The notes beneath the pieces were generated by a model, which had not been told where the DNA came from, made no database searches, and saw only the letters and a list, made by a program, of their open reading frames with translations. The position numbers were made by a program, and so were the translations under genes. A DNA stretch of 64,000 bases. Source: Klebsormidium nitens (lineage: Eukaryota; Plantae; Klebsormidiophyceae). The stretch spans positions 1,716-65,715 of the forward strand of contig DF237462.1 of NCBI GenBank assembly GCA_000708835.1, read 5' to 3'. Positions 386 through 62,600 of the stretch are shown here, piece after piece. Numbering within the stretch: position 1 is the stretch's first letter; each line of letters starts with the position of its first letter.

Positions 386-3300
386 TAAGCTCTGAAGTCC
401 GGCCTCATGATGTTTGCAAAGTCTTGCGTTGATGATTGGGCCATGTTGGATTAGCGACAGCTGCTCACACGGACATCACAAATTGCAAATCACTGTCTCT
501 TTGCTACGCCAACGTCTTTTGGGGACACTAAAACACATTGGCTATTTCGTACTGACATGAGGGAAACTTCGATCGGGCCAACTACTGTATTTGCTTTGCG
601 GCATACGTGCAGATATGACCTGGTGCATGTGTATATGCCGATGAATGTACTTGCTTGCATTTGATGCCGGCCCGTCAGGTGAATGAGGTAAATGCTATAC
701 TATGCGCATCAAAATGAACGATAAGTTGGCGGAAATACCATGCAGCAAAGCTCTAGTGCTTTTGATGTAGCTGTACATTCCGCTTGCGATCATGTCACCT
801 GTGCGATCGATGATCGTACCAATAGAAGTCGCATGGCACATTCATACAAAAAGAACGTACATGGGACGCATGTAGGCAGTCTCGCTGTTTGCTTGTTAAA
901 CAGCCGTGAATCTCTCTCCCGACCAAACGCTTTGGTCGGGGTCATTCTCAATAATCCCCTTCAACGCCTACATAAGAGCGAGTCGAGAAGGATCTTATAT
1001 TGAGTTCAACCTGTCAGCAGGTGAAGGATGCGGCTGTTTCCATCAGAATGTACTTGCAATCTGCAATCACTCCGAGCATATGCACGAGATATATCGAGCT
1101 CGGATTCGATGCGGCAGCTCGCCATCATTCACGCTCTGTTTCGTATCGAATTCCAACATTGGCAACAAGTAAATCGGTCGGTCTCGAAAGAACAGCTTGG
1201 TTCATGCCCAAGGAGCGCGTTGCCAGCTTGGCGTGGCTCGTCGACTCAATCCAATTAAGCTTTTGCGCTCCGTGAATGGTTTCAGACAAGGCTAGATTGA
1301 CCGCTCTCGAAAGAACTACCTTCAAGCACAAAACGGTCCTACTCAGCCGAGCTTGATGATCCGCTGACCATTCTAAACATTCTAACGGAGTGTTTTTGAG
1401 CCAATCATTCCAAAGATGATACCAATGTCACCGTCGACTCGAGAATTCCTGTGCCGCCCCTTGTTTTCTGGCGTCGTAACTGCAGGAAGAATAAAAAGCG
1501 AGTGGTTATGATTTTGTTTGGAGACGAGGATGCCATCTCGAACAGCCTGGCTTTGTGGCATGATAACACAAGACAGAACGGCCCGAATAGCTAGTGGAAC
1601 CAGTGGACACGGCTTGGACGGGATGGAGGGCTGAGAAAGAACTTTGCACCATTATATGACCGGGTCTTACCTACCTTCTATGGACTTGGCGGGCTTGCTA
1701 CTCTTCAGCTCAGGAATGTTCGACGCGTTACGTAAACCGAGTTTTCAAGACTGCAGTGGTGATGATGGTCCGATACAAGTTAGCATCAAATAGGCGTATG
1801 ACTCTTCGTTATGCTTCTTTTGACAGGTTCGAGCGCGCTTCTGACAAAGATTCAAACGGGCGATCGACATGGAATGAGTCCGAATTTATACGAACTCCAA
1901 TGGGCGGCCAATAAGGAGCTCCGAGGATTGTCCGGCTCCCCCAGCTCGGCTTCTTCGATTTCAAACAATCAGGAACAATCATCGTATTACCATCCAGCAA
2001 AATTCAAGAAGCAGGTTTGCAAAGCAACTAGATGTGGATCTGGCGGCCCACCTAGAGCTTAGAATTCCGGGGACGTTGAAAACGGGTCCCCCGCCAGACC
2101 GGCAGCCGCTGATCATCTCCCCGAGGCGGCCCTCTTGCTGACGTCAACGCCGCGCGCGAGTGAAGCGGTTAGCGTACCACCTGCACGCTCGTGCGCGCAT
2201 ATCCGCCCTTCAGCCCTCAGCACGCGCGCGGTGGACATCTGCCTGACAAGCGGCTTGACAACGGCGCTCCTGTGAAAGGTCCCAAGGAGCTGTTAGGAAA
2301 CGTGAAGGAAAGTGTCAGACAACGAAAAGATGGGGTTTGAACGATCTTTCCGAGAGGTTTCAGAGAGATTTTGGTACCAGTACTAGCGGTCTCGGAGGAT
2401 ATGGAGAATCGAAGGTCGTACTCTCGGGATTTTTGCCTGGCGAGACATCGCTGAATTCTCTGGTCAGGGACTACAAGTCGTTCGGCCGTTCCCTTCCGAT
2501 TGCGTGAATCTCAGGGAGAAAGAGTCGCCTTCTTCCAGCCCGGCTGTCAACGCCCACTCAGACATCTTTACAACTTGGTCAATTTCGTCACAAGCATATC
2601 CAGGCCCCACCGAGAATGAAGGTCGAGAATGAAAACATCATCAGAAGGTCAATTGGAAAACTCGGTGCCTTGATCTGTCCTTTTCTCGACCTTCCCTTGC
2701 AATAAGCGTCTCGAAAAGGCGGCCTGAATTTTGAGACCCGACCCCCCACAAGTAGATCAGGAAAGCGTCTATTTGTCACAAATCCGTCAGAGCGCCCCAC
2801 ATCTTCGCGACTCCTTTGGGAAGGACTCCTACAGACAAACTTCAAAAAGCCTTCCAGTACGCTGATCCTCCAAAGCGCCTCACCTGTACGGCTTGTCCAC
2901 GAGATCGCCGCCGCGTGATCACACTGCAGCTGCTTCCGAAGTCGTTACTACCTCCGGTCAGCTTGCTCCGCTCGGTATCGGGGACAGTGAGATGTAGGAC
3001 TTCCATTGAAATGCTGAAGGCAGGCCTCCGTACAGGTATCTCTCGCTGGCAGTTTTGAATCTCGTGCGGCCGCTGCGCTGCCTGCACAAAGGCGGACCCA
3101 GGGATTCATGCGGGGGTTCACGTGGCCGCTACTGGCGTCAAAGGGACTGAAGGCGCTCAAATTCAGGCCGGAAACAACGTCGGGTTTGAGACGTAGTCGG
3201 ATCTTTGGAACTCAAGGACGATCCGGGGAGGGCTCAGGAACGAGTGCGGAAGAATGCTCTTTCAGACTTCAAGGCTTGAACGTGCTCATACTGAAAACAC

Positions 3301-4311: not shown

Positions 4312-4320
4312 TTAGGGTTT
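4312..4320 (-). promoter_or_regulatory. Telo-box-like motif (AAACCCTAA) upstream of F-box paralogue 2
   Basis: Exact 9-mer on the minus strand about 1.2 kb upstream of ATG 5514. The function is inferred only from the known plant telo-box. Confidence 0.25.
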
Positions 4321-5171
4321 CTAAATGGCCCCAAACATAATCTGCATGGTACAAAGAAACGTGCAGAATGATATGAAACTTGCCCTTACCCTAAAGAGAC
4401 CCCTTTCGGGCTACGGTGCACAAGATTACCACCCCCTGGAAGCACACTGCTTCCGGCCTCCTGTCAAACTTGAATAATTTGCCAGCATTCAAGCTGACAT
4501 CGCCGCCTCCAGCATTGGCCCTGCGTCTCCACTGCGAGCGCTGACGTCACCGTTGCTTCTTTCCTGCTCCTGCCTTGAGCAACTGACAACATCGAAAGCA
4601 GCGGGAGGGATTCTAGAAAGATCATTCGTGTCAATGTTGTTTCAAGGTCGGTTCTGAAGCCCCTGATATTGCTGAGGTCAGCGGGCGCAGTCGCAGGTCT
4701 GCAGGAAAAGGGACGGACGTCGGTGTGCAGCTAGCGCTCGCCCGCTCTGTCAATCCTCACCATGTGCGGGTTGAGCTTTGCGTAGCAGCTGCAAGCGGTC
4801 AATCACATACCTGGCGGAAACATCAAGAAGGAGTCAAGTTATAAGGCTGTTCATCGTTAACAAGGTGATGATGAAAGGAAGGAGCGCTGCCCATAAGGAG
4901 CCTCGAAAAAGCTTTTCCCCTAAACCACTTCATGAAGCTCACAATGTACCTGGCAAATGAGATGAAGAACAGACCACCAACGCAGGAAGTGGTGTCATAC
5001 AGCAGGTGATGCTTGCTGCCCAAGACTGTGAAGTGGCCTTCCGGTTGCAATGATACTCCCTCGATCCTTATTGCGGAAGGGGGATCCCCTTTGCATAGGA
5101 GCAGCTGACGTGTTTTTTTATGCTTACTTTCGACCAATCCGAGTCCTTGCTTCTGTCCAGGTGGCATTACG

Positions 5172-5220: not shown

Positions 5221-5513
5221 CCTCTGCTGACTCGCCTCTGAGCTGACTCCAGATTGAGCTTGGCAGCTTGAGCCTCAGGTATAGAGTAAGCTGCAGAGCT
5301 GCTTCTTGTTCACAACTTTCACTTCCTCTGGAAGCAAGTTGTGTTTTAGCTCTCTGGCGCCCAGGCGATCTTCGGCGATCAGCGATCAGCGATCAGCGAT
5401 TAGAGTTTTGCGAGCAGCGAGCAGCGTTCGGCGACCAGCGATTAGTTGTAGAGGCTAGGAGAGTTTAGAGGATAGCGCGCTTCCTGTTACAGAGCATTCC
5501 CCTGCTCTGCAGC
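5200..5513 (+). promoter_or_regulatory. Conserved non-coding upstream/5' UTR block shared with 20233-20539; includes a GCGATCA heptamer run at 5375-5400
   Basis: Long near-identical tracts directly before both ATGs, e.g. ttcacaactttcacttcctc, ggaagcaagttgtgttttagc, ctctggcgcccaggcgatctt and gctaggagagtttag. Confidence 0.8.
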
Positions 5514-11400: not shown

Positions 11401-13623
11401 CGCCTCGCGGGCGCGCAGGTCCTCCTCCGCCGCTTTCATCTTCACGTCCAAGTCCCCCAGCCTGACCTCCGCCTGTAGAAATAACACGTCTGCTGAGCAC
11501 GAGGGTAGAATCATAAGCTGGTTACAGGGGTGCTGAGGTTCTTGGCCACGTGTCGACACGGGCTTAGGTTTTGACGTCGATTCGAAATGTTCATATTCTG
11601 CTTCGCGTTCGGCCTTATCCTATTCTAGCTTTCTCCTCACTCTTCCCAGATTGATTTTGTAAGATGTGCATCAGTTTTGCGGAGCAACAAAGAAGAGAAC
11701 TCTCACGTCGAAATCAAAGGGTACAACACGATGACGTGCTCGCAAGTAGCACCGACACTTTGAGACGCGACTCGAACTCGTGCTGATTTTGCTGAAAGCT
11801 TCCTCTGAACCTCTTTTTACCCTATTCATTTTTCAGGATCTGGATGGGATATTCAGACTTGGGGTCCGCTCTGAAGCAAAGACGTTCACAAGAAGCAAAC
11901 GCGACACGCCGGGCTGGCGCCTGTGAGTGGCTGCGTGCCTTACCTCCTCCCTGAGCTTCTCCTCTTCGCCCGTCAGGTTGTGCGCAAAGATCTCGCGGGA
12001 CCACGTCGCGAGATCTGAGTCCGCGTCTTCCGGAAGCTGCAGACGAGCAGATCTTGAGTCAATGGTGACTATCTGGTCTCCCAACTAGAGCGAGAAAGAA
12101 TCTTCCTACTGAATGCTGACGGTAGGGGCCGAAGACAGCTCGAGTGATACATTAGTAGCCATGCTTTCAAGTAGCATGGCCTTTCCTGTCGCAGATTAAA
12201 CGCCAGGGGCTCAACTGATTGACCTTAGAAGTTTGGCAATGCAGACCGCACAGGACAAATGTTCATCACCAGTACACGTGTTTTTAGACACCCTGAACCT
12301 GCATGTATCTGGCAGCTGCTGACGTCATGGGATTTTTAGCGCACATTTCGAAAAGATTCGAGAGACAACCGCACATTTCAATCAGCCTCGGTCTGTGCAT
12401 TTCGTTCAGGCAGCAATGGGAACGATCCAAAGGAGTACTTGCCAGAAAGTCGAGCGAGTGGCGGCCGAGCGGGAGGACGCCGTGGGAAGCGATTGGCTCG
12501 CGTGAGACGGCTGCGGCGGCGGTGGAAGACGTCGCCAAAGCCGGCGCCGGGCGGGCACTGGGCGGGGAAGCCAGGGCTGATGCGGCCGCGTGTGGGGCGG
12601 GGCCGCCCGCGATCAGGCCGAACGCCGGCTGCACCGCGACGCCGCCAGCCGCGGTCCCAGTCCTGCTGCTTTCCGTCGAGGCACTCTGCCGGCCCTTCTG
12701 CAGGCAAAAATCGGAATTTGAGAGGCTTACTGGGAGCTTGAACCTATGGAGAGACTCGAAGGAAAGCAACTTTTATAAATTTTGAAACGGAACGGAAAGT
12801 ACCCTTTAACTGTTGAGTTGTCAATGCCTCCACGGTTTTTGACGTTTTCCTTCCCATCCCATCCAGGACACCTTTAGCAAGAAAAACAGTTTAGAAAACC
12901 TAAAGCACCCCCAAAAAACTCGGAAAGATTTCAACCTTCCAGCCCTCCTTCTTGACCTCAATCTTTATAGCACGATTAGCCTTTTTCTGGCATCTCGACA
13001 TCCTGTGCCAAAGCTTTCAAGGGGGCCATATTTACTGGAAATTGGAAGATTATCTGCATTTACCACACAAAAGTACTCAGATAATAAGATAACATTCAAA
13101 CAAGTCATCCAATCAATTTCTCACACTTTTGAAAAGGTTCTTGCAAAACCAAGCTTGCGAAATTGCCACCTACCTTCGATCCATTCGCAGGGAGCAGCTC
13201 GCCCTTCCGTGCAGTTGTTGAGCGGGACGCCGCCTTGCTGGCCTTCGTCGAAAGGTCTCCCGGCGACTTTGCTCCCAAGTCAGAGGCAGCGGTTGGGCTG
13301 CGGAAGGAGGTGGATGTCGCCCTGGCCAGCTTGGGGGTGGAATCTGAGGCCGCGGTAGAACTTCCCCGGCGCGAAGGAGGTGAGGCGGGGGAGCCGGCTG
13401 CGGTGCTCGACGCCCGGGCGCGCGAGACAGAGGGAGGAGGCGGGGAGAAGGTAGGGACTCTCCGTGCAGACGGGGGTGCGCGAGCAGACAGTGTGTTGGC
13501 TGGAGTAGAAGTTGGGGGGGACAACGTGCGAGCGCGGACCGTGGAGGAGGCGGTAGGGGAGAATGCGCCCGAAGTCGCAGGCGCGCGCGTCAGGGGGCGC
13601 CCGCGTGCCGGGGGAGATGACAC
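8462..13623 (-). CDS. Unrecognised multi-exon protein A: Ser/Pro/Thr/Ala-rich region followed by coiled-coil segments; 5' end not found
   Basis: Exons 13623-13174, 12697-12443 (or -12299), 12036-11944, 11472-11323, 10741-10235, 9764-9663, 9445-9353, 9077-8814 and 8485-8462 (last exon tentative). Each has a YAG acceptor, the internal exons have GT or GC donors, every length is a multiple of 3 and the chain stays open. E/K/A/R heptad-like composition. No in-frame ATG in the first exon found. Confidence 0.7.
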
Positions 13624-18900: not shown

Positions 18901-20203
18901 TTCCATGTGGCTTCCTCACCTTGCACATGGGCAAATCCGCGAGTATCTTGATTGCGCCTAAGGGGTTGCAAGCACGTGCCTGCGCTAGCCCCGATTTGAC
19001 CTGGAACAACGCCTGGGCGAGCATTCCAAACACGCGAAGCTGACCTGCAAGAATATCAACAAATTAGCAGTTATGCTTGAGCTGCAAGGTTCTACTGTGG
19101 GCTCTCTATCAGCTGCACTGGGAGGGGCTTGCTGAAGTGTGTCAGCGCAATCGTTGACTTATACTCATTACTGCCCTTTTCCCTGCCAAGGCCCTGCCCT
19201 CTCAACCTTCTCATTGAAGATGGTTTTCTGTGGGGCAATCAAACAGCTCGCAACGAAGGTTATGTTTCACGCCATTCATGACCCGGAATCACGTCCTCAT
19301 TCCTGGGGCCTCTGTTCTGGGGCACAGAAATGCTTGGAAGCATCAAGCATTTGCGGGTATGGCGAGGACTACATGCCAAACTGCTGCCTGAAAACAAGGC
19401 AAGTCGACGACAAGCAAAGGTGAGACTCTATCCAGAACAAAAAGCGGTCCCGATTTTATGCTGGCCCGCCCGAAGGACTCGCAATGGCCGGCCTCCTGGA
19501 GAGCTAAATTGCTGAGGTCATCATCACGCCCATCAACCCGCGCCGCCTGTCAAGTGCCGCCCACCTCAACATTGCTGACGTCATCACCGCCATTTTCCTG
19601 CTCTTGCCTGCTCAAAGTGCTGATCACATGACGAGCTTGGGAAGCCATGCATGGGGAGGTGGCTTTTCATGAAACACGGAACTGCTTGAGGGTAATTGGC
19701 TTTTTGAGAGATCTGCAGATGCACGGAGAGGACACTGGTGTGTAGCTCGCACCAATGCAGCTTGTCCTGAGGAGGGGGTCCCGTGACGGCTTGTGCATCA
19801 CAGGCGGCCCTTCAGCTGGTGGGATAGAAGCAAGATGTGAGTGTGATGCACATACTAGACTGTCTACTATTTAGGACTTTGTCCACCCTCACCTGAGGCG
19901 TTGGCCTGGCAGGGTCCATTCTTTGCGCTTTTTGAGACGGCGCTTGGTCCACTAGGCCGAGCGCGAGTGGGCGGGGATTCCATGCGCGCCACCGTGTTGT
20001 GCTTTTCTGTTGGAACACCAGATGGAACAGAGCCTAAAGGTTGAAGGTAGACCAAGCGCAAAGTTCTCCCTGACCTCCATTTGGTCCATATTGCATTTCC
20101 GGCCAAAAGGAGGGATCCCCTAACAGAGTGGAAGGTGACGTGTCCCATGTTGGTCACTGTCAACCAATCCGAGTCATCCGATCCTGTCTAGGTGGCACCT
20201 CTG

Positions 20204-23423: not shown

Positions 23424-26400
23424 TCAGATTTCCAACCGATCTGAATGGCGACTCGTTTCTATACAGTGCTCGCAAAGCTACACCAAAAAACGAATCTCTG
23501 AATATCAATCAAGCGACACTACTGATAGCACCCACGGCCAGAAAAGTGGGAATGCATCGGATTATAACGTGAAGAGAGTGTGGTAATCTTTTCTCCTTTA
23601 CTAACGACAAATGGTGCACATACCTCGGCCTCGAGTGACTGAATGGTCAGCTGCTGTTGCTTCACAGTCTCTTTGAGATTCTCTACGTCCTGAAGTGCGG
23701 CGTCGAGCTTCGTCTGCAACTGCAGGCGCCTAAGCCGGCTTTCCTCGGCCCACGTCTCTCTATCCAAGTCGTGCCGTTCCTTCTCCTTCTCGCTCTCCTG
23801 CTTGAGGGTCTCGATCTCTTCCTGTTAAGAACACGAGACGTGTTTGAAAGTGAATGTTTTCAAAGCCTGGCATTGACTTGACGGTCCGTCGGATGGCCTC
23901 GCGGTCAAGTACGAACGAACGGAGCCTTTCACGACGCGCTTGCTGAAAGAATTGAGCTCGCACCTCTTTGAAGCTTTAGACCAATACTTCCAGGTTTTCT
24001 GTCGCAAAATTGTTCAGCGATAACAATCTGCAGTAACATACTCATAGCTACGGGACCCGGTACTTCCAGCCAAAAAGTCAAACTGTGCTCGTAAAACTTC
24101 ACCGCGTGCTATCAGTCCACCTTTTTTTCTGAAGGGGGCGCTCTGACTGATCACACGAACTTGGGATCTGAGCAAATATGTTTCAGGGTTCGACGCAGTC
24201 TCACGGATGAATCCCGAACCTTTTTGACAAGAATCAGAGCTTTGCTTGATTCACTAATCAACGGATCTTTCAGCGATGAGCGACTAAGGCCCTCAAGTCA
24301 ACTCCATTGATTTGCCCTTTGGTGGGTCTCTCTGCTTGTCGTTCTGGCAATTCCGTTTTCGAAACGAAGCAAGGCAGCTTCTTGAACAGATTGACAGATA
24401 TAGGCCGTCTTGGCAGTGGATGCAGGTGAAAGTCTCAATCCGTGTGATGTCTAGGGCCTTGGCCCGAGAAGGCATGTGACACCAGGCTCTAGCCTTTCAA
24501 CTGACCGTAGAAAATCAAGCCCTTTCGATTCGGATCTTTTGCCCAGCTTTTTAGCACCTACCTCTCAACAAAGAGGAGTCGTACGCTTTATGCTTTGTCT
24601 TGGTAGATTTCCCACCACTCATCCGAATCAGAGAAGGTTGCATACTTTACACTTAAAGAAGCAGCAATAAAATGCCTTTCATAGAATCTCACCAGCAGGC
24701 TCGCGACCGTCACCCGCAACGTGCTTGCTTCGCGGCGGGTGGCTCTGAGCAGCGCGGCCGCGACGTCCTCCGGCTTCTTCGTTGGAGAAACGGGCGACTT
24801 CAGTTCCTGCAGCCAAGCCACGACAGAGCTTGAAAATCTAGAGAAGATAAATCGACATTCTTCTTGAAATGTTCCTCAAACGCACACGGCTTCCGAGCTG
24901 AGGAAGCACTTGGTGAGTGCCGATACTCTCGGTTGTTTCCGAGATTCACAGAGCGTTTTTCCCGAATGGATCGCTCGCCACCAAGCATGATTCCGGACAA
25001 CATGAGGACCATATATCAGATGGCGATCGGATGACAGCATTCGGGTGTCATCTCACAGAAAAGTAGGCTGCACCAAGACCTTGGGACCACTCTGAATGCT
25101 CTGGAAGTGGAGCTACGTCAGCGGGTTCTTGCGGTGACGTCAACTGCTTCTTCCCTTCTCGGGGTGCATCTCCTTTGCTCGCGCTCCGCGCGTGTCCTTG
25201 CCCACCCCCCTTCCGGCCCACTCTCGTCCTATGGCGCGCGCGAGGTCCATCTTCGCATCCTTAAGCTTTTTGTTTTTCTCCTCCACCTCGTTCTCCACGA
25301 CCCTCTGAACCTCCATCATTGTGTGATCGTCCCCTTCCGCGACCGCGAGCATCACTTTGCCGTTTCGCAGTCCCTTCCGGATGTCCGCCGTCTCATACCC
25401 CACCTGACTCAGGCCCTCCTTTGCCTGCCCGATCTTTGCAACTGCTGTCTCAGCGCGCGCAGCTCCTTCACCCCCTGCTTCCTGCCCTTCGACCGCAAGC
25501 TTCTCAAAGATGTTCTGCACGGTAGAGATCCCCCCTGTCTTTTCCCCGCTTCCCTTGTTGGCTTCCGCATCTGGCGCAAGCGGCACCTTGCCTTGTGCTT
25601 CCGAGGCTGCCCGTCGAGAGTTGGCGAGCATGACCTTCTGCTCGATGTCCGCCAGCTCCCGTTCCTTCTGGTGAAGATCCTCGTTTGCCGCCAGCAGCTT
25701 CAGCTTCGTTTCCGCTTCCGCTGCTTCCGCTAGGTCCGCCTGCGGATCAATCCTGAGTCTCAGCATCAAAAAGGCCTTTTTCCTCGACTTCTGCGACTCT
25801 AGATCCGGATTTGAGAAGCCTTCAAACCCTCCAGTGTGAAATTCAAAACAAGGTATTTTCAAAATTGCTGAAGAGTGGATGCTAAAAAAGCCGTCAGAAT
25901 ACCAAAACAGCCTCACGGCCACCCTCGAGATAGTTTAATCAGCCCATTGACACCAGTACTGGAACAGTCTGCTCCATCATCTTTGATTTAAGGCCTGATG
26001 ATGTATCAAAGAGAACTGCGTCTGCTTTTCTGCATTCCTACTCAGCAGCGAGCTTCTGATTTGTTGACATCCCATTGACATGTTTGGACGAAGCTGTAAA
26101 GTGGCGAGACGAACCTCTGCTTCTGTCTGCTGCTGAAATACAGGCGATGTTCTTAATCGAACTTCCGAAGATAACCTCTTGTCTCTGAGAGGTAAAAGTG
26201 GCCTACTCTGAATCTGACATGTCCTTCGAGACGAAAACAAAATTCATTTTCAGAAAGCTGGGAGAACGCCACGAGATTTTGCTATTGAATCCTCACCGAC
26301 TCCTTTGCGGCTTCAATTTTCCACTTCAGCTCCTGCAGTTCCGTGTCCAGCCCCCAGACTTCCACCGACTTGACGTCTTCAGTAGCGACCTGAAGAGAAA

Positions 26401-31235: not shown

Positions 31236-38403
<7,168 letters not shown>

Positions 38404-39904: not shown

Positions 39905-42900
39905 ATGGCGACCACTCAGCGTGGCGAGAAGTCTTCCAAGATCTCCAAGATGAAAGTCAGGGTGCTGAGCGAGGAACTTTTGAAGCCCAAGACGCCTGCG
40001 GACCACCCTAAGCTTCTGGAGCTCTCCGTGATCGATCAGGTTCAGCCCCGCTTCCATGGGCCACCGATGCTTGCGTTTTTGGGACCGATGCCTGATGGTA
40101 GGTTCATCGTTTTCTGAATATGATTTTTCTAGGTATCTGATTCAAAGAGGTTGGTCAGTCATTCTGTGGCTGTCTTGCTGGAGTCCAAACTTGAAAGGAT
40201 TTATGGGGGTGTAAGACTGGGCTTATGTCTACCTGCGGGGTCACACTGCTCCCGGATGTGATGTGCTAGTCCCACCACTTGATCTGACATGTACTGGCAT
40301 TTGCGCAGCAGATTCACTGAGAGCACAGCAAACAAAGTATTCTGAAAGATCTAGCTCCCACAGCTTTCAGATACTTATGTCTTCTGACAATCCGTTGCTC
40401 TAACGTTTCTGACAATGAGTCTACTGGCACGCTGTGCTTGTGGACAGTCCAACTCTGTCGTCCCGTCTTTAAATCCATTCTTGTTTTTAATGCTTGAGCG
40501 ATCTGTTCTTGCAGCACTGCCATTTGAAGAGTTTGTGCAAAGAAGCAAAGAAGCATGGGCAAGAACACTGGTGGCATACTACCCTCTGGCTGGAAGGCTG
40601 GTGGTAAGCCCTGAGCATTAATTTTTAGCTTGCTAACAATTTCTACAGTCATGCTGGATGAGGTAGTGAAGAAATGCACATTGCTTGATGCAGATGGTTC
40701 TCTACTGCAAAGAGTCAATCAAGAGACTATACATCAAGAAAGATACAGTCCTCTTGGCGCCTCAACTTCTTGTGAAGAAACGAAGTTGTGAGTGTAGTCT
40801 CATGTGTGTCCGTTGCGCGCCAGCCTTTATCCTTGCCTCAACGCTATGCTTAGATCTGTTCCTTGTGTCAGTCAAAGTTTGACAATAGCAAAACTTTTGA
40901 GTCTCTGCAGTGTCAATCAGCTGGGGAGGCACCCATTCTTTTCCATTAGACCTTAGTGACCTTTGCCAATCTTCTCACCCTTGTGTCACGACTCCCTTTT
41001 GCCCATTCGCATTCGAACCTGTTGCCTTCTGGACCACACATCAGAACAGATTGCCAAAATTGATGGCATCGTTCAATTGTGCTTGCCGGGTTCATGGTCT
41101 GAACAGGCACAGCCCTCCAGCCTTTGAAAGTCCTGGGAAGTGTCTCAAGGCAGAAGTGCTGAGCATCCACTCTGTGGCCACTGTTGAGCTCCTCTCATGG
41201 TGGCGGCTGATTCACCTGACCAAGTGTGAAGATACTACGGTTAGCCCTGAGATTCGGAACTAGCTGACATGAAGTACTCCTGTGCGCACTTGAATTCGTG
41301 GACATCTGACTCCTAACCAGCCCATGCGACTAACGACCCTTTCCTCTGTACCGCAGAGACAAAAGGAAGGGTGCCTCGCCATCGACTGCAACGACGCGGG
41401 CATTCTCGTGCGCGCTGCCGAGGCGGACTGCCCACTGCCGCAGGAGATGGTGACGGGGACGAGCATGGCTGGCTCCGACAAACTGTTTTTCACAGAGCGG
41501 GGAGAGGACATCACTACAGTCCCACTGCTATTGATACAGGTACGTGAGGAGGCTGCTGGCAACTTGGCTCCATTGGATGACGCGACTCAAACGCGTCGTT
41601 ATAGATATAAAACCTTAAACGTACCTGGTTGAGTGCCTTCGGATGGCCAAGGTTGTGCGGTTGAAGGAGACTGACTTCGGGTTTCACGAAAAACGTCACT
41701 ATTCTAAGCTAGAAACCAGTTTCGCTTTGTCATGAGAGTTCCTGAAGAGTTATTCGCATTTACGTTGACCTTGCTGTCATCCCTCGGTGACTTTGCGAGA
41801 CAAACAGCCTAATGAAGCCCAGCCTTATATTCTTCATCGCTCTCTTGTGAAATGGCGGAACAGTGTTAGAAGCTTTCATCTCGTTTATCATGTATGACCC
41901 CTTTCTCGATGCGTTTCATCCATAGCAACGTCGCCCTCTATTAGAAGGGCTTCTCCTACTTTGCAGCATCTCCCCTGCTTGTTTCGTGAGCACGAAGTCA
42001 TACGCACGATGACGTCACACTCGGCATCGTAGATACTGCACAATTGAAGTAAACAAAAGGTAGCGCAATCTCCTAGCTCGCGCCTTGTCAAGCGCGCATT
42101 GTCTATGAATCTCGAATTAATGTACGATAAGCTTTTAGTTGACCTTGCATTTTAACCCGATCGGGTTAGGATTCAAAGGCTTACGTGCTACACATTAACT
42201 CCCACCCTAACCGTTCAACTAACTCCACCCCGTCTCGCTGTCAAATTCGTGGGCTTACAGTACACTCAACCGATTGGAAATTTTTTATTTCTGTGCAGTT
42301 CACGCGGTTCCAGGACAACTCGTTGTGCATGTACTTCGGGTTTCATCACACTGTTTCCGACGGGGCCAGCAGCAGCCTTGCTGCCTACTATTGGATAGAG
42401 CTGTTTAAGGGGAAGGAGCCGCCCTTCGTCCCAGTCCATGATCGTTCCCTACTGAAGGTAATTCTTGTTACAATCGGTCAGGAGCAGTCCTCTTGAGACA
42501 GAAGATTCTAACTGCGGTTTTTCGGCTTGTGGGTGAAACTAAGTTCGGTCAGAAAGAGTCATACTTGAATACGAATGATCAGTTTTGTGGCATTCCCTTC
42601 TCTTCGAGACGATTTGGTCAAGTCATGTCCGGCAAGGTCTCGTTCGAGTTATCTGGATGATCTGCTCCGGACGTTGAACAGCCGCTTTGTCACCGATCAA
42701 TTGTAAACCAGTTTTTTTTTTGGGGGACCTTTCAACATCCAGATCACCTCCGATGCCGCCGTCTGCATTTCAATCTTAACAACGTGAAAGTCAGAACAAA
42801 TCATTGTGACTTAGAGTAGATGACATCCTTTACTGACGCGCCAATTCACATTTGCGATTGCAACTCGGAGGTCCCCACGCGTTTGCTCGTAGCTCAAAAC

Positions 42901-45614
42901 GAGGTGGCACCCTTTCCTGACGGTTGGCATCGTGCACCCCGTAATCACAATCAAATTTGGGTGAGGGCCGTGACGTCACCCAAATTCTCAAATTCCCAGG
43001 TGCAGACAACCCAGAATCCTGAAACTCACGCTAAACATGCTCCGCACCCGTACCCAATCTAAACCTGGTGGGAAACCCACCCGTCCCCCCGGCGATGATC
43101 TACCTCAACAAAATAACGAGAGCAATCATCCTCCCGTCGCAGGCGTCAGGCGAGCCGGTCCCAAGCAAGACGCACGCCGTGCTCGGGTTGGCGCCCACGT
43201 TTCCCATTCCCAAGGTGGTGAAAATAATGCTGGGCAGCCCCCGGTTGAAGAGAGTGATCCCGTACCTGCCCAAGCGGATGATCCTGCCGGACGTGCCCCT
43301 CCACCGGCTGTTCTTCTCCAAAGGAAAGCTCGAGGTAAGGGGCGTTGGATTTTACAGTCGCCTCATTGAAGAGACTTTGTCTTCTGGTGTTGAGGGTAAA
43401 GATGTAGGCTGAAGCGGTCCACCGGCTCTTTTCTCCAAGGCGAAGCTCGGGATAGGGGCCTTTGGGTTGCAGAGTTGGCTCAATGCTTGGGTTGCGGCCT
43501 TCTATGTTGGAGTGGAAGATCCAAGTTGTAGCGACCCGACGTATGCCTGTCCCGTTAGTTGAGTGGAGCTGACCTGAACCGCTCGTCGGACATCGAGTGC
43601 TTTCATTGGGCCAGGCACTCGGTTAGACGATTTATTCTGCGACGTTTCTCGACGTAGACTTCTGCGAGAAGAGGACCGAGCAAAGTCATAAAGGGGTAGT
43701 GTCCTCTTACTTATTCCTTCAATTTGCCGCTCAAAGAGACCGACCTCTCTTAAGGGATTTTGTCCAAGTAGTCGTCGAAGCTGTCCTTACGTTCAACGTC
43801 CGCTTCAACCTTTTCTCCGACAAGCCGAACGTCCCTGCTCAGCCCACTTGCAAAATCTGTTTTCAAACCCACGAAGCTCAAGGTCAGGTGCTTAAGTTCG
43901 TTTCAAGCTATACCGTACGTAAAGAGTCGGTATTTTTGATCCGCTGGTCGAAGGACAAATGAACCACATTCCAAGCACGGTCCTTCAGTGAACAATCAAC
44001 TCAGCCACTGACAGCTGGATGTGTTCTCTATGCGGATGACCAGGCGCTGAAAAAGGACGCGTGCGAGGGCCTCCCAGCGGGACGCTTCGTGTCTACCAAC
44101 GACGCCTTGACCGCTCTGCTGTGGCGGAGCATCAGCGCCGCACGGGGGCTGCACAAGATTCCTGAGCAGGTAGGAATAATCTTCAACGCAAAGCTTTGAA
44201 CCATTGTGACTACAGAAAGTAGTTGTATCTTCTTCCGATTGGCTTCCAATTGGGTTGCCTTCTTGACCAACGCTGCAACCCAGGAGCATTTCCGTGGAGC
44301 CTGTCAGGTTTCTTTTTGGCATTTTTTGGAAGAAACAGGCACGCACAGAGCAGGTTTTTACGCCGATCCGCCATTCCTAGCAGCCCGAAACATGTTCCTT
44401 CGTCGCAAAGAGAACCTTGATTCGGCAAAAGCATCATGCCATGGCGAACCCTCCAGGTTACGTCTGCGGTTTACAGAGCGCGTTCTTTCGTCCCAGACTC
44501 TCTCGACTTTATTAAAGGCCAGAATCCTTCGGCGCTACTCAGTCTGAGCTGCCTTGTTACTTCTCAGCATTTCTATTTTGTATCATTCAAAGTACGGTGT
44601 CTCACTCGGCCGCCTGTCCCGCGTGCAGAAAACGCGGCTGGCGTTCGCGGCCGATGGGCGCTCGAAAACGGAGCCGCCTTTGCCGGAGGAGTACTTTGGA
44701 GGGGCAAACATCACGACGCTCTCGGATGCAACTGCGGCGGACCTCCAGAACCAACCCTTGTCGTGGGTAAGCGGTCTTAAGTGAGAAGAGAAAAATCCAT
44801 CTGGAACTTTATTGAATCCTCATCAACATCCGTAGGGCTACAAAGCTTTCTGACGGGGTCGACTAGATCCTAAGACTGTACGAGAGTCATGAATGTCTGG
44901 CAACAGGACCTTCATGGTAGCTGATTTGAGTGATGATGAATCTGCGCTTGCTAAGCTTGACGCGTGAATAGGATCTGTAAGAAACTACGAAGTGCTGTCG
45001 ACTACAATGTTCGCAGCTCCGTCCTTCTCACAGGTAAGCCACACCAAGATTCTCGTGCGGAAAGTGGTGATTTATGTCCGTTGGGGTCGAGCCCAAATCT
45101 AAAGGAGGAGTCGGTCGTCGACTTATACTCACGGTTGAGTTTGGTCCCCGATTGTTGACGAGATGTCCTTTGTTATGAATGGGCATCAGCTGACGGCAGT
45201 CTATCATCTGCTTGACGTCAAGCTTCTCGGTGTAGCCAAATGTTCCCGTTCCCACGTCCTTTGCAGAGCGCGAGCAAAGTGCGCGACTCGGTGTCGCGCG
45301 TCGACGCCGGCTACGTCAGGAACGTGGTGGACTGGATCGCCGAGCAGCCGAACAAGGCCGCGCTAGGTTTGAACATCAACGCGCATTTGGGGCCGGATCT
45401 CCTCGTGTCGATTTTAACCAAGTTTCCTATCGATTTGATGGACCTTGGTTGGGGGAACGCTCTCGCCGTCGCGCCGGGAAAGTATCACATCCCCTTCGAC
45501 GGCCTGGTCGTTCTCGTTGGGTCCCGGGGGGGGGTCTGCGCGTTTGTGAGTCTGCTCGCGGGACACATGAAGAAGCTGATGAAGCACGAGCCGCTCTTGA
45601 AGTACGTCGGTTGA
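39905..45614 (+). CDS. BAHD (HXXXD-type) acyl-CoA acyltransferase, 475 aa, 8 exons
   Basis: Exons 39905-40097, 40515-40603, 41357-41539, 42299-42457, 43143-43334, 44044-44169, 44629-44766 and 45267-45614 (1428 nt, in phase). Motifs YYPLAGRL, IDCNDAG, PLLLIQFTRF, catalytic HHTVSDG, STNDALTALLW, YFGGA and DLGWG (variant of DFGWG). Confidence 0.93.
43300..43530 (+). repeat. Degenerate tandem duplication (period 118 bp) of the BAHD exon-5 end and its splice donor
   Basis: tccaccggctgttcttctccaaaggaaagctcgag|gtaagggg at 43300 vs tccaccggctcttttctccaaggcgaagctcggg|atagggg at 43418. The donor GT is lost in the copy. Confidence 0.75.
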
Positions 45615-47003: not shown

Positions 47004-50000
47004 TCACGGCCGGTACCGATCCTTCGACCGGCTGATCGAATTCCAGTCGCCTTGGAGGTCCATCGGAATGGACCGGTCCCCGAACGTCTTCGGCGTCATG
47101 CCCGTGTCGTCCGGCATGTACGTGTCCTGGAACTCGTGGCCGCGCAGCCGCAGCATGTCGAGCTTCTGCTTGCGCGTCTCCGTCGCGAGCAGCTCCGCGT
47201 CGTCCTTGCGCCACCCGCCCGGCGGCGGCGGCTGGTCCAGGTCGAGCGCGCCGATGTGGAACGGCTCGTAGCGCGAGTCGTGCCGGCGGATGCAGTCGAA
47301 GAACTCGTTGTCGGTGGAGGGGAAGGTCGCGCCGGCCATTTGGCAGATGGCAAAGATGGCTGGCACGCGGTAACGGTACCGGGTCTGGCTGCCGAGCTTG
47401 TGCGTGATGGGGTATGGTTGAGTGATGGCGGACGGGACGTGCGTGTCAACGACTGTAGATGAGTAGAAAGGTGTCACAGTGAGGCCGACGTTGGACGTTT
47501 GGAACAACTTGCGATGTTAGAGCTTGTAATCCAGGGCTTCCTGAATCTTGTTGGCGGCTCTGCTTACGATTGAAGTATCACACGGTTTGGAGAAATGCCG
47601 AAAACCTCTGGTCGATGACGATGATATGAGCAAAGTAAGCAGCACGTTAACAAACTCAACCACGAAGAAGACCAAAATCAGCAGCAAAGAATGGAGCCCT
47701 TGACGCCCTTGCAAAACCGCATGAGTGTATATCCGAACCCGCTCGACTTTACGCCGCGTCGCCAAGCGAATCCCCGATTCCCTTAAAGCAGCGAGTTTCA
47801 GATTTCTGAAGTTCGGAGAGCTTTCTTTACGCATCACATCTACTTTCAACAATTGAATATGTGTGGAAAATAAAGGCGTTATCCTTCTCCCATAGGGAAT
47901 GCGAGTTCCCGGTCACCAGTCACGTCCGTGAGACGGCACTGAAGAGATAGCAAACAGTACTTAGAAGTCAGCTGCTCAATTCTAAGAAATGCTGCGATAT
48001 CCAGTGGTCTGTGGAGCAGGGAAAACTTAGAAAAGGGAACGATGAGGCCCTTCAAGCAAAGGTGACCGATCAATGGACATGCTCCCACATTAAGTCGTCA
48101 GGCACAACCACAAAAGGTCACATCTGCTCGCAGCAGGTTCTTATGACGTCATCAAACACGAAAGAAAAGCTTTCAAAAGGGCGGTCACACGCGAAACGCC
48201 AAGGCTTTGCTCGACTCACTATCGTGGGCTTCGTTTCGCCACCGGTTGCCGTCGCTTGGCCTTCTGCAGATGCCGTAGTAAGGCTGCTCGGGGGCGGGGC
48301 GCCGCCCGACAAACACCTTGTGGCACTTGGTGCACTCCTGGAGAACAAAAAGTAACACTAGTTAGAGCTCTCCCAGCGTCTTGGAGCTATCAGCCGTCCA
48401 GAAACCTCTGGAAGTGCCTCCTCTGTGCGGATGCAGGCGAATCGAGGGCAGTTTAGACTGAGATCCCAGTGACGCTTTCAGGATTGAGGTCAAAGTACCG
48501 AATTCTGAAACCATTTACTTTCGGACTGGGGCTCCCCGGATCGAATTTCGGGCATACTGATTTGAGTCGAGGATGTAAATCTTCAGAGGGTAGAGTTTCT
48601 GCTGACGTAAGCACCGTTGCGGCACTGCCGGATCAAGACGTCATGTTCCAGCCGGCGTGCAAAACAGACCGAAACAGAAAGTCGGTTTTCGATCAGGGCT
48701 CCCCCGTCCGAGATTGGATTTTTCCAGAATCAGGTAGTTCACGCTTACATCCGGCACCTCAAGGAAATAACAGTTTCTTTGCAAATTGCACGGCCACTCC
48801 AGCGATTTGCTTCAACCTCCCTCCACTAAGAGTTCACGGGAGGAATAAAGTTGCATCACCCACATGGGAACCTACGGACTCTTAACCTTGAAGACCCATA
48901 AGCGACTTTAACCAACGGAGTGAAGAAGGCACAGCATGATCTGCCGTATCATCTGTCTGTACCCAGCGCAAAGGGCCATGGGGTCAACGCTTGTGAGCAA
49001 GCCGCTTGCCTGCATGAAGAAGTGGTCGAGCAGTTTATCCAGCTCCGGCCGCAGCTTCAGGTCCCGGGCCCGCCCGTCGACGATCTGCAGAACCGCTTGA
49101 TGACATCAGCAGGCAGACTGGCTCGCAAAGCGCCAAGCAATGGGACGACAAGCTGCTGCGAAGCTCGATGTGGCACTGGGACCTTCTCAGGAGATCCTTG
49201 TGGTAGCCAAAGCCATCTTTCAGAGCAGAAATAAGCAGCTAGCTGGTTTAGATGGATGCCTTTGAAATAATGAAGGAGAAGAGTCGGTTTGATTGTGAAA
49301 GAGCAGAATTGCCAGGCAACACGCCCCTGTTGAGGAAAAGGTGACACTCCTCTTCTGTTGGCAGTCGCTTATAAGCTGCTTCAATGGCCACGTTGGTCAG
49401 ACCGATTTAGGAAGAGGCAGCATCAAAGAAGCCTCGCTGACAAAGGCGCACAAAGTGTGGGTAGCAAGCATGGACACAACGGCAGCCTTCCTATTGGTCT
49501 CTGTTCAGAGCGCCCCTTTATCCTTCTCGTCCTGAAACAACCTAGTGAGTAGCATCGCAAAATGCTCCACCATCTACCGTGGATGTCCTTGTGATGCTCG
49601 CATTCGTAGTAGGTGCTCATTTGATCCAAGCAGCTGGAATGGAGAGTGCACCACTCCCTCCATCGACCGCCAGAAAAAGACCGCCAGGAAGAATTGACAA
49701 AAGCATCGAGCCAATTGCGTATGTTGTGGCCAATGCTGCTACGCTTTGTAATTTCAAGCAGCAAGATCAAGAATGCGCAGCGATAAGCGACTGCCAACAG
49801 AAGAGGAGTGTCACTTTCTTCTCAACGGGGGCGTGCTGCCTGGCAAATCTGCTCTTTCACAATCAAACCGACAAATCTGCTCTTTCACAATCAAACCGAC
49901 TCTTCTCGTTCATTGTTTCAAAGGCATGCATCTAACCCAGATAGCTGCTTATTCAACCAGCTTTGACTAACAGTGGTTCGCACGGTCATTCTCTGTTATC

Positions 50001-54600: not shown

Positions 54601-55664
54601 CGTTTCGTTGAGTAAAAGTAAGAGAATATTGTTTGTCTTCCTCACCTTGACCCGCTTTATATGCAAACTGAGACGCGTCAATGCCCAGGGACGAAGATCG
54701 TTGAACTCAATTCCGGTTTGACAAGCTGCCACGTGTCCTTGCACCGCAGGTGACGCTAGTAATAACCGGGATGCTAGACTTGATTCTCGTGACGCGGCTC
54801 AACCAGCGATTCGGCATTCCGGATCACGCGTTTGTCGTGGGTGACGAGGCGGTGCAGGACGCAATCGACAACCTGCGTATGGTCCCCATGCAGGTGCGTT
54901 CGCATAATGCCACCTGTCAGATTTGCATCGGCCGCCTGGGCAGAAAGACCCTTCGTGAATGCAGTGCTTGTGAGGCCAATTATCGGATGCTTTTCTGTTC
55001 GTGTAGCTTTTGGGGGTTTACGTCTGAGTAGATTGTACAAATTGGAGGCTTAAACCAGAACTGAACTTCGTGTAGTTTGGAGGCTCTGAATCTAAACCCC
55101 TGTCGTCATCGATCTTTTCCCAATCAACATTAAATCTGCAAGCTGGCACAAACTCGCCAGCCTGCACCAGAAGAAATTCTGTGGACGAGATGACCGGTCG
55201 CTAACATTCCTACTCGCAACTTTGGATCACACGTGCACGGTCGGCTTTGCAATCGGCGACGCTTTGCTCTTCGGGATTAGAGATCCTCTCCTCCTCTTTC
55301 TCAGGTCCTAGCCGCCCGCCTCTGCCCCCCCGGAATTGAGGGCACGCTCTTCGCCTTCCTGATGTCGCTCTCCAACGCCGGCGCGAACACCGCAGAGCTG
55401 CTAGGGGCAGGCCTGATAAAGGTGCTCGGAGTGACGTCAACAAACTTTTCCAACTTGTGGCTTGCGGTAACGATCAGGAGCTTGATGAAGCTCTTGCCCA
55501 TTGTGTTCCTGTTTCTAGTCCCTGATGCGAGCCCAACGTCAGACTTTGGGGTCGTAGGCGGAGGAAAGGGTATACCTCGGGACAGCGATAGCGGCGTTGA
55601 CCTGACGGTTATGCCTTTGAGCTCGGAGGGACGTGTTGATGACCGCCCGAGAACACCACGATGA
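51681..55664 (+). CDS. Folate-biopterin transporter (BT1/FBT family, MFS), 533 aa, 7 exons
   Basis: Exons 51681-52028, 52334-52618, 53204-53377, 53616-53710, 54224-54419, 54750-54893 and 55305-55664 (1602 nt, in phase). Family motifs YYWKD, LPWDIKPLWGLLTDSFPI, DVATDA, RLNQRFGIPD, ARLCPPGIEGTLFAFLMSLSN and NFSNLW. About 12 hydrophobic segments. Confidence 0.93.
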
Positions 55665-59620: not shown

Positions 59621-62600
59621 TCAGTTCGTCATGCAGCTCTCGTAGGTAGGGATCATATATTTAATGTTAATGAACGCGTCCTCGCCGCCCTTCTGCTCGA
59701 ACAGCTCCAGCGTCCGCATGACGCACTCGCCCATGCACTGCTGCTTCTGCTGCGCATAGTCGATGCCGTCGCCCAGATTCTCGGTGTGGTTCTTGAACAG
59801 GTTCAGCACGGGCAGGATCTGCCGGTAGTACGGCACCAGCGCCTCGCCCACCATCTCTTCGCTCTCCACCAGCTTGCACAGCAGCTGCCACAGGGGAAGT
59901 TGGGGAATTAGAGATGGCAAATCAGGTTTAAAAGCTTTGAGATTAGTGAAGTCACCGGCGTGGGACGGGTAGGATGAATTTGGGAGTTAGGGTGGATACG
60001 AGTGCGGAGCAGGAGATCCTGTGAGTCAGCTTTCTAGCCTTGGATTTGAGGTGCCTATTCCTAAACCTTGACTTTTCCCCAAGATTCCCCCAAGGTACGT
60101 AGGGGAACGGGTCAGAGTCAAACCTGGACCACTCTTGTCGCATACGGCCCTTCACATTTGTATCTCTTCTTATTACTTCGAACTTTGTAGCTCTGCTCAG
60201 GCTTCTCAACCGTGCTCACTTCTCCGTGCTTCATTTCGCATTGCTTGCAAACTGCAAACTTTTCATTTGATAGGGAAGACGTTTGGCAGAGAAAATGTAA
60301 CCCAACCCGATTGCAGCCGGATCAGACTGAAGGAGGGCGATTTGAGGAGACTGTGAAACGATCATCTTTACTTTGGACGCAGGCTATTCGTGAAGTTTGT
60401 CGCGCCCATTCAGCGTCCCGGCTAACGGTTTGCGTGTGCAGGGGGCGTTAGTATTCGCAGTTCTACTTCAAAGCATGCGAGGTGCGAAAAGTAACCGCGT
60501 ACTCTTCTCACCCTGCCTATAAGGAACGGGGAAAGAAAAACCATGTTATCTCCGGAGGAAGGAAGTTGTGCGCCTGAAATCCTACACGAGCGCTTCTCGA
60601 CCCTTGGCTGATTTGAGCTCTCCGTCCAAATTCCGGTACTTCCACCTAAGCGACTTCGAAGGAACTTTGAAGCTTAAGGACGTGCGTCTTCATTCACTAA
60701 ACGTGTCTCTCCAGAGACGGGGAAAGTTTCGAACTTGAGTTGTGAAAGACGGCGCCACGATACGATAAAAGTGCCCGCTGTAATCCATTCCTTGCCTGGA
60801 CAGAGCTGGGCCGCTTAAATTCAGTTCCCCAAGAAGATTGGTACACAAAAGTATACCGAGGAAGGACCACTGAACAGGGTCCAGCGAGGGCCAGCTTACC
60901 TGGAGCGTGATGTTGATGACGTAGGAGTCCCTCGTGTTCAGGGCGGTCTTGATTGGGATGATCAGCTGAGGGATCACTGGCAGTATCTTGCCGTTCCCAA
61001 CCTGCAACCCCGAAGCGAGCGGCGTTGGCTCTGGTATGCATAAAATCTGTTCTGTGACCACCGTTTGGTAGCTCGAGTTGTTCGAAGAGACACAGTCAGC
61101 ACTAAGCCAGGATAGGCTTGTCTTTCCCCCTGCTTGCGATCGAAGCGCGTTCGCTGATCGAAGCTTGGAGATTGCTATCCAAGTTCTACATCACCGTGCT
61201 GCTTCCGTTGCAATTCCGCTGCTCTTGTGCATTGTTTTCCTCGCTTTGGCTTTCTCTATCGATAATTGCAACAATCGGGGGAAGTGGGCGCCCCAGACTC
61301 TGTGACTCTGTTTTGCCGTTCCAGCATCAGGTGCTTTCAACCGCAGAGGCAACGCCCAACTCTCTTGCGAAGCGCACCCTCACCTTGAGCATGTCCTCGA
61401 CGCCCTTGATCGCTAGGAACCGGTACGGCTCCTCCTTTTCCCGGATGCCGTCGAAGAAGATGGGCAGGTAGTGGTGGTAGTCCAGCTTGCTGACGTCAAC
61501 CTTCCAGTTGATGGTGTTCTTCGAGCCCCGGTGGTCCACCGAGATGGGCAGGTCGCCCCGCTCGTAAAACTTGCGGAACTGCAACGGAAGAGGCACGCTC
61601 GCGTCAGGAGATGACGTTAGTAATGTGCGAAGCTACGAAGTGAGCATCAGGGTGTGCTCCGAAGAAGTGAATGGTGCGCCGGGAGTCCCTGAACTAATTG
61701 AATATAAGTGCAGGCTTTGTCCCGCACAAGAGAGAATTGTGGAGCAGGAGTGCAAGGTGCATGACGGTTGAGGATCCTTCAGGGGCCTTACGAAATACCG
61801 GTGACAAGAATCTGAACGGCTCTTGCACAATGTGTCAACCCGGAGCTTGAGCTCACGAACATCATCGACTTTCCTGACTTACAGCTGCCCGAACCGCTAC
61901 AGACTTTCGCTTTCAATTTAGCCGCCCCTTGATTCACTGGATCTGCCAAACTGTCTCTCTAGCACAAAGAGCTTCTCGAGTCGCACCCAAAGGCAAAGCT
62001 TTTAAGCTGTCCTAAGCTTTCCGTTCAACGAAGCAGTCAGCTAAGAGGGGGAGATGGCGTATCAGGCTCTCTCATGCTCGAGCTCTTGGAACAGGAATTT
62101 CGGCGTCATAGCTTGAACTGTGCAGCGGGCTTGCCAAGATCCTCTCTTCCCTCAGGATCTTGTTCCATCTTTTGCAGCCAATTGCATTTTCCGATCACTA
62201 AACAGCTGGCCTTGAGTAATTTAAAAAGGTCCAGAGACAATGAAACTCACGAGCGTGTTGGGCGGGTTGTCCCGCTTCTTGAAAGCTCCCGCCTTTGGGG
62301 GTGACGGCTTTCTGGGCTCCTTTTTGAACAGCCCGCTCTTGACCATCTCGCCGTCGCCCTTGCGGGTGAAACTGTGCGGGTCCGGCTTCTCCCCCCGGAA
62401 CTTGTACTCCCCAGTCGAGCTGCACGGGAGGATTGCGTTCCTTGCTTCAGAGACTCAGTTTAAGCTTGCTAGAAGGTCTGAAGTGAGAGAAGAGAGGTTT
62501 CTCAAGCTTTACCAGCAGGCTCCACTATGCAGAATTGGGCGTGTCTCAAGCTCACAAACTGGCTATGAATGGCTATGATGAGGCTAGGTTATTGCTTTCG

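Follow-up and report, generated by a model that had tools for sequence, protein, structure and literature searches.

The palindromic octamer TGACGTCA occurs in 16 exact copies in a stretch of 64,000 nucleotides (the window) taken from scaffold DF237462.1 (65,715 bp; window position = record position − 1715) of the streptophyte alga Klebsormidium nitens NIES-2285, and it is the most over-represented 8-mer there. An earlier note on this DNA, made from the sequence alone, had counted at least 16 copies against about one expected; all 16 were recovered where it had placed them, and 100 dinucleotide shuffles of the window yielded a mean of 1.08 copies and a maximum of 6. The copies are found in coding, intronic and intergenic DNA, as that note had also held, and form the centre of a symmetric unit of 12 bp. 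With somewhat less than even confidence, we read this pattern as selection, at the level of the DNA, for sites of a dimeric binding protein of bZIP type in all compartments, accompanied by decay at the CpG and by turnover of single copies.

Excess of the octamer and the 12-bp unit

Under Markov models of orders 0 to 5, the number of sites expected in the window (both-strand counts halved to give sites) is 0.97, 0.94, 1.2, 2.0, 2.6 and 5.2, respectively, and the observed number exceeds the order-5 expectation as well (16 vs. 5.2, P about 1e-4). The order-6 expectation (11) is circular, since 32 of the 37 TGACGTC 7-mers derive from TGACGTCA itself. The excess is specific to the octamer, as had been claimed: 16 of the 31 GACGTC sites in the window carry the T...A flanks that make up TGACGTCA, whereas the 15 other flank combinations are at chance. 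A general enrichment of palindromes was considered as the cause and rejected; the 8-bp palindromes taken together exceed expectation only mildly (312 vs. 240-260), although a few other words do stand out.

Two further stretches of another scaffold (22 kb each; L009 and L010), which had been picked via paralogues of F-box genes and not via the motif, were pooled with the window to give 109.8 kb (about 110 kb), a sample of a genome of roughly 100 Mb. This pooled sample contains 24 copies, compared to 1.6 (order 1), 3.1 (order 3) and 9.1 (order 5) expected, and the octamer again tops the 8-mer ranking (P 6e-14, order 3), followed by its own extensions. Its density amounts to about 220 per Mb, i.e., about one copy per 4-5 kb, and its observed/expected ratio (O/E) to 8-15. 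The two added stretches possess 1 and 7 copies, with 0.3-0.75 expected in each, such that the excess is genomic rather than peculiar to the window, but patchy. Concerning the independence of copies, the site at 2139 is paralogous to that at 33778 and the site at 4542 to that at 19576, which leaves 14 independent sites in the window compared to 1-2 expected. Regular spacing, as reported for the highly iterated palindrome HIP1 of cyanobacteria, is not claimed given the 1 and 7 copies in the other stretches, although the gaps in the window vary less (coefficient of variation 0.64) than they would if copies were placed at random (0.95; P 0.04 in a post hoc test).

Some other words are over-represented in the pooled DNA at order 3, namely CGCGGCCG (22 vs. 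4.8), GCGGCCGC (14 vs. 3.4) and CACGTGGC (15 vs. 3.4), and within the window AAAGCTTT (12 vs. 3.2 expected) and ACACGTGT (4 vs. 0.6). The hybrid word TCACGTCA/TGACGTGA has 0 copies vs. 4.5 expected.

The sequence preference extends beyond the octamer. Among the 48 half-sites, G is found at position −2 in 32 (67%, p 5e-9), on both sides and whatever the orientation of the gene, and weak leanings exist towards C at −1 (35%) and T at −3 (38%). The iterated unit is G-N-TGACGTCA-N-C (GnTGACGTCAnC), a 12-bp palindrome. In the window, three perfect 12-mers GCTGACGTCAGC (33776, 36442 and 36571) and seven more matches at 11 of 12 positions exist, while 0.25 are expected; the earlier note had given three and several. 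For the AP-1 7-mer, there is hardly any enrichment. In its perfect form, the 12-mer is identical to the cAMP-response element (CRE) used in the CREB bZIP-CRE complex (PDB 1DH3), and it is also the core of the Maf recognition element c-MARE, TGCTGACGTCAGCA. The octamer itself is a strongly favoured target of plant group D bZIPs and equals the CRE-like element of GCN4 (PMC10163045); TGA bZIPs are reported in Klebsormidium, but not in chlorophytes (PMC6508501). A symmetric 12-bp unit of this kind corresponds to a textbook site of a bZIP homodimer, which makes selected protein binding the simpler reading. Its symmetry on both strands points to a dimer reading double-stranded DNA, and not to an RNA signal.

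The copies and their transition variants are listed below (strand in brackets where one is assigned). Sites outside the two genes verified here, a helicase gene and PACRG (Parkin co-regulated protein), were placed by a crude score of codon usage, for which three genes of the window served as the training set; it recovers every verified helicase exon and is consistent with the gene ranges given by NCBI. Between 38 and 64 kb, site placement rests on this score.

2139..2146: TGACGTCA, decayed paralogous fragment of a helicase exon (2107-2225), just outside an annotated gene model of 134 aa
4542..4549: TGACGTCA, 972 nt before the ATG (5514) of an F-box gene, at the start of an island of conserved non-coding DNA (36 bp); coding score ambiguous
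12320..12327: TGACGTCA, between the coding-sequence starts 12266 (-) and 12327 (+) of divergent genes; coding score -15
19576..19583: TGACGTCA, positional paralogue of 4542; intergenic, 964 nt upstream of the ATG (20540) of the second F-box gene
25135..25142: TGACGTCA, within gene 23206-27146 (-), immediately 3' of the exon-like segment 25155-25742 (-); either the end of an exon or the beginning of an intron
30154..30161: TGACGTCA, intergenic, flanked by gene 23206-27146 (-) and the helicase gene; coding scores below zero in every frame
32587..32594 (-): TGACGTCA, RNA-verified helicase intron 32571-33021
33776..33787 (-): perfect 12-mer GCTGACGTCAGC (octamer at 33778), helicase exon 33684-33915; codes V-L-T-S-A
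36442..36453 (-): perfect 12-mer (octamer at 36444), helicase exon 36253-36736, variable linker; codes N-A-D-V-S
36571..36582 (-): perfect 12-mer (octamer at 36573), helicase exon 36253-36736; codes G-A-D-V-S
42010..42017: TGACGTCA, no coding signal; in the half of the window without annotation
42971..42978: TGACGTCA, non-coding; an exon-like segment (+) follows about 90 nt downstream
45213..45220 (+): TGACGTCA, probably intronic, 45-50 nt upstream of a 3' splice site TTTGCAG (prediction only) of the exon-like segment 45264-45608
48144..48151: TGACGTCA, no coding signal
55432..55439 (+): TGACGTCA, exon-like segment 55299-55436 (+), at its 3' edge; overlap with a splice donor is possible
61491..61498 (-): TGACGTCA, PACRG exon; codes V-D-V-S
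36394..36401 (-): variant TGACATCA; coding strand gTG ATG TCA, V-M-S of helicase motif III (VVMSAT)
33539..33546: variant TGACATCA, helicase intron 33162-33683
46400, 49101, 54239, 59037: other transition variants

Copies in exons, introns and upstream regions

RNA contigs from four studies define a minus-strand gene for a DEAH helicase (DHX33/DEAH10-like) with GT..AG introns, and all three perfect 12-mers are coding in it. Those at 36444 and 36573 are situated in the variable linker between motifs II and III, where a low-complexity insertion of about 60 residues (36253-36736, -) separates motif II (DEAH) from motif III (SAT). This insertion diverges fast among Klebsormidium relatives, yet it contains one or two copies of TGACGTCA in each of the three taxa compared. 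The site at 36444 forms together with its flanks a perfect 14-bp TGCTGACGTCAGCA (36441-36454), and the block around 33778 is also kept in the paralogues at 2139 and L010:21843. A fourth verified coding copy lies in the PACRG exon, identified by Pfam (E 9e-28): K. nitens completes the octamer there with the rarer valine codon GTT, and the residues read V-D-V-S, as compared to V-E-I-E in most other species. Thus, of the coding readings proposed in the earlier note, ADVS (36444, 36573), LTSA (33778) and VDVS (61491) are borne out by RNA contigs or Pfam, whereas VTST (25135) belongs to a shadow open reading frame on the plus strand opposite a minus-strand exon, with the site just outside that exon.

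The RNA contigs of all four runs also contain a more abundant transcript, which matches the helicase only at 33112-33132 and 34465-34502 with a non-canonical GC..GA joint; it is probably the mRNA of a paralogous helicase rather than a splice form.

The coding copies exceed what the encoded proteins and codon usage would give. In the verified helicase coding sequence, three of three amino-acid contexts able to encode the octamer do so, while synonymous shuffling yields 0.08; for the pooled verified coding sequence the numbers are 4 vs. 0.13, and none of 3000 synonymous shuffles reaches 4. Both frames that avoid a TGA stop are in use there (DV three times, TS once). Among 63 exon-like K. nitens segments (6,801 codons), the octamer occupies 6 of 13 x-D-V-z contexts (0.33 expected) and 1 of 5 [LMV]-T-S contexts (0.12 expected), together 7 of 18 with 0.45 expected, and the dipeptides DV and TS are not over-used in these segments. 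When each compartment of the pooled DNA is compared to its own composition, exon-like DNA possesses 10 copies vs. 0.24-0.75 and the remainder 14 vs. 1.4-2.2, which corresponds to densities of 0.48 and 0.16 per kb, i.e., a difference of about threefold.

The copy at 32587 had been singled out before as a possible branch point, and it indeed lies in the branch-point zone of an RNA-verified intron: the A of its CTGAC is situated 21 nt before the AG of the 3' splice site, with a pyrimidine tract downstream of it. The motif is present in only one of the eight RNA-verified helicase introns, however, and a branch-point role (CTRAY some 18-40 nt before the 3' splice site, then a pyrimidine tract) is impossible for exonic or intergenic copies and could cover at most 2 of the 16 (32587, and possibly 45213 by prediction). 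Since codon-aware and compartment nulls are exceeded, neither protein constraint nor codon usage nor branch points explain the excess; it also persists under the order-5 null and reaches beyond the window, such that each of the trivial outcomes considered in the earlier note is contradicted.

Placement in a promoter or enhancer is suggested for 4542 and 19576 and is plausible for 12320, but at least four sites lie in coding exons and one in an intron. The 36-bp island (4540-4575 vs. 19574-19609) is the sole collinear alignable block in the otherwise diverged distal upstream DNA of the two F-box genes, and about 40 nt from the site at 12320 a G-box-like palindrome, ACACGTGT, is found. Both the island and this pairing look footprint-like in their conservation. 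The proximal upstream regions of the F-box genes align at 75%, while their proteins are only 49% identical, and a GCGATCA-type microsatellite is kept in the proximal upstream/5' region of both (about 5375-5440 and 20400-20440). Concerning the divergent genes, the annotated starts 12266 and 12327 are just 60 nt apart, and one of them consists of the last A of the palindrome plus TG; since the first clear coding signal begins only at 12042 (-) and 12504 (+), at least one of these starts is probably mis-called.

Old F-box/LRR paralogues (49-72% protein identity), each adjoining a DEAH-helicase gene or a decayed fragment of it, are found on two scaffolds (window 2107-2225, 5514-7479 and 20540-22476; L010:10001-12121 and 21749-22121), an arrangement that indicates repeated segmental duplication of a putative F-box plus helicase unit. 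The fragment around 2139 aligns with 33744-33875 over 132 nt (72% identical, indels included), and its octamer is intact. A three-way similarity among 4542, 19576 and 36444 appeared in a MAFFT alignment, but was lost in blastn, and only the pairs 4542/19576 and 2139/33778 were accepted as paralogous; a tblastn search of the window with the helicase protein revealed no further paralogous exons. Elsewhere in the window, nested inverted repeats (49230-49372 and 49783-49953; arms of 82-99 nt with 90-93% complementarity, 410-560 nt apart) adjoin a GC-rich stretch with long open reading frames on both strands and may constitute a foldback or small mobile element.

Decay, turnover and the competing explanations

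In the pooled K. nitens DNA, flank variants of the octamer are at chance, and variants of the central CG alone are in excess: TGACATCA/TGATGTCA with 10 vs. 4.7 and TGACCTCA/TGAGGTCA with 12 vs. 4.8. Within the window, the excess of transition variants is weak (6 vs. about 3). The TGAYRTCA variants listed in the earlier note are real, except that the one given at 36393 starts at 36394, and a further one exists at 54239. Transition variants carry the G(-2) signature (60%, p 0.001), which was not found in transversion variants, flank variants or AP-1 sites. K. nitens is described to have CG gene-body methylation, its methylation being reported as generic CG, CHG and CHH only (PMC5890265). There is thus some support for the variants being true copies that decayed by CpG transition in a gene-body-methylated genome. 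The proposal that they are deaminated copies fits the shared G(-2) and the state of one orthologous site (see below), but not the variant at 36394, which was rejected as a decayed copy as it is forced by the conserved Met codon of V-M-S in motif III.

The comparison among species covers three orthologous positions in two relatives, represented by the Logan runs SRR23617307 (L011) and SRR14092359 (L012; L006 for PACRG). The former, a relative of congeneric level, has kept the whole 12-mer at 36573 and exhibits TGATGTCA, a synonymous change, at 36444. In a more diverged helicase copy from SRR14092359, neither site is found in the alignment, but an own copy of TGACGTCA is situated about 20 nt away in the same linker; at the PACRG site the exon protein of the SRR14092359 relative, here a close one, is identical, while the DNA reads CGACGTCA, with one synonymous base different. 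The SRR23617307 relative is enriched in the octamer as well (4 copies in 23.6 kb vs. 0.4-1.0), whereas no excess exists in two more distant algal contig sets from metagenomes, with a single copy each in 20 kb and 29 kb.

Selection for a supply of sites is favoured because the unit is symmetric, all compartments are enriched, neighbouring one-base variants accumulate, and orthologous copies are lost and replaced nearby. Under this reading, the 12-bp palindrome would be recognised by a sequence-specific protein that binds DNA as a dimer and is most probably a bZIP belonging to the CRE/C-box class. Selection acting on the DNA itself, rather than mutational bias, would keep about one copy per 4-5 kb, which amounts to roughly 1-2 copies for each gene; these would be found in promoters, in introns, in intergenic DNA and, about threefold denser, in exons. 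Exonic motifs would be accommodated through the choice of codons and, in some cases, through conservative replacement of amino acids. Single copies would be impermanent: they would be lost notably by CpG-to-TpG transition, fresh ones would arise nearby, and the net outcome would be turnover between species with a maintained local supply. The benefit of binding might lie in intragenic regulation, in chromatin organisation or in an interplay with gene-body methylation.

Several points weigh against selection for such a binding site. The density of the octamer differs strongly even between the two added stretches, and the nearest relative has kept just one of the three orthologous positions intact, indicating weak constraint on single sites. 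The threefold density in exon-like DNA and the frequent overriding of codon choice are unexpected for ordinary transcription-factor sites. Moreover, a classical CRE-binding bZIP might be unable to bind within gene bodies should their CpGs be methylated, and the exon calls beyond the helicase and PACRG rest on the crude codon-usage score.

A HIP-like process and a role at the RNA level are retained as alternatives because this exon-like density and codon override are unusual for transcription-factor sites. It is conceivable, though doubtful, that a eukaryotic counterpart of HIP exists here, i.e., a CRE-type palindrome of 12 bp that is spread over gene bodies and intergenic DNA, is present about once or twice per gene and is maintained genome-wide for a function other than gene-specific control of transcription, under a pressure strong enough to shape codons as well as protein. 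If so, it could serve for example to mark or organise chromatin relative to gene-body CG methylation, or to flag host genes to a silencing or repair system.

Also unlikely is a HIP1-like process in the strict sense, in which an activity linked to methylation, repair or conversion generates or restores TGACGTCA regardless of gene structure, binding being secondary or absent. Such a process would fit the enrichment of every compartment and of both permissible frames, the overriding of codon choice, which coincides with the lineage-specific amino-acid replacements in PACRG, the excess on other scaffolds and in a close relative, and the central CpG in a genome with CG gene-body methylation. It would not fit the one-mismatch neighbours, which are not depleted, nor the flank variants at chance; a drive repairing T:G to C:G should remove the products of CpG transition, yet these are in excess. 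The orthologous sites are lost or displaced rather than fixed, the deviations are central and not terminal as in HIP1, the density is about 220 per Mb vs. 500-2500 per Mb, and no sequence-specific methyltransferase is known for this alga, the proteome of which was not searched. The proposal of a genome-wide process distinct from ordinary transcription-factor sites is therefore upheld in so far as more than promoter sites are involved, but not as to a process that generates the motif.

A signal acting in RNA (for example an exonic splicing enhancer, an element resembling a branch point or a site of RNA-protein contact) appears quite improbable. The denser occurrence in exon-like DNA would agree with it, as would the copies near predicted or verified splice junctions (32587, 25135, 45213 and 55432; L010:711 and L010:5455), but these junction placements are mostly predictions made without RNA support, copies also lie in intergenic DNA and between divergent genes, and an RNA signal needs neither a palindrome nor symmetric flanks on both strands.

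Ordinary promoter sites of C-box/CRE type, supplemented by copies from gene duplication and by intronic copies that serve as branch points (CTGAC), are largely refuted as an explanation, and we give it very little credence. Two of the 16 sites are paralogous duplicates, 4542, 19576 and 12320 resemble promoter elements, 32587 has the exact geometry of a branch point and 45213 may share it; nevertheless, the independent sites still far outnumber expectation, four sites lie in verified coding exons far from gene starts, where the codon-aware null is rejected, and a branch point requires CTRAY alone and not a full palindrome with symmetric flanks. It is hardly credible that the copies descend from a dispersed repeat or mobile element that bore the palindrome at its ends or inside: the site at 42971 is enclosed by a longer inverted repeat, AATTTGGGTGA..TCACCCAAATT (42951-42986), but no repeat family overlaps the sites, the flanks beyond about 3 nt are unrelated save in the two paralogous pairs, for which reasons a repeat-borne origin was dismissed, and the word TGTCCAAG is adjacent to no site in the window.

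Those who annotate this genome should note that synonymous sites around TGACGTCA are not neutral in K. nitens.

Comparison with known systems

With respect to abundance, the octamer resembles Chi of E. coli, the DNA uptake sequences and the M26/CRE hotspot of fission yeast, all of which are short words that occur about once per few kb and are kept at the level of the DNA in coding and non-coding sequence alike; M26 itself is CRE-like and is bound by a bZIP pair. Chi and the uptake sequences, however, are bacterial and strand-oriented, and motifs of recombination hotspots are expected to erode by drive and not to accumulate; nothing here ties TGACGTCA to recombination.

The Maf element c-MARE is approached most closely at 36444, which matches it over 14 bp, while the three perfect 12-mers equal its core and G at −2 is the strongest additional position in K. 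nitens. Only 35-38% of the half-sites possess the C(-1) or T(-3) of its TGC/GCA flanks, though, and Maf proteins are, to our knowledge, confined to animals.

The closest likeness in sequence is that to the CRE/C-box sites of bZIP proteins (CREB/ATF, GCN4 and the plant group D TGA factors), with which the K. nitens unit shares an identical palindromic core including ACGT, symmetric flanks, a footprint of 12 bp that would suit a homodimer, and a promoter-like position of some copies. Known sites of this class are promoter or enhancer elements of particular genes, in contrast, and have not been reported as the top octamer of a genome or as being enriched in exons against codon usage.

In its effect on the sequence, the K. 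nitens octamer is somewhat like HIP1 (GCGATCGC) and the alternate HIPs of cyanobacteria, yet it should not be filed among them. Both are GC-rich palindromes of 8 bp with a central CG-type core, are the most over-represented octamer, occur in coding DNA in several frames as well as in non-coding DNA, and shape codon use. The mechanistic likeness to HIP1 that the earlier note had drawn fails nonetheless. HIP1 reaches 500-2500 copies per Mb with a very high O/E, and its one-base deviations concern the first or last nucleotide (PMC4390886), whereas the K. nitens palindrome belongs to a eukaryotic nuclear genome, attains about 220 per Mb with an O/E of about 8-15, and deviates predominantly at its centre. 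HIP1 further has cognate orphan methyltransferases that recognise internal sub-sequences, while none is shown for K. nitens, where the proteome was not searched for them.

In a literature search, no paper was found on a comparable iterated palindrome in a eukaryotic nuclear genome, nor one that links TGACGTCA with Klebsormidium. In cyanobacteria, HIP1 is a known case of a short palindrome whose genome-wide over-representation prevails over the choice of codons, and it is unexplained after three decades. Because the word in K. nitens is a well-understood protein-binding site, and the alga is culturable and has a published genome, a methylome and many RNA-seq sets, the cause of palindrome iteration becomes directly testable there.

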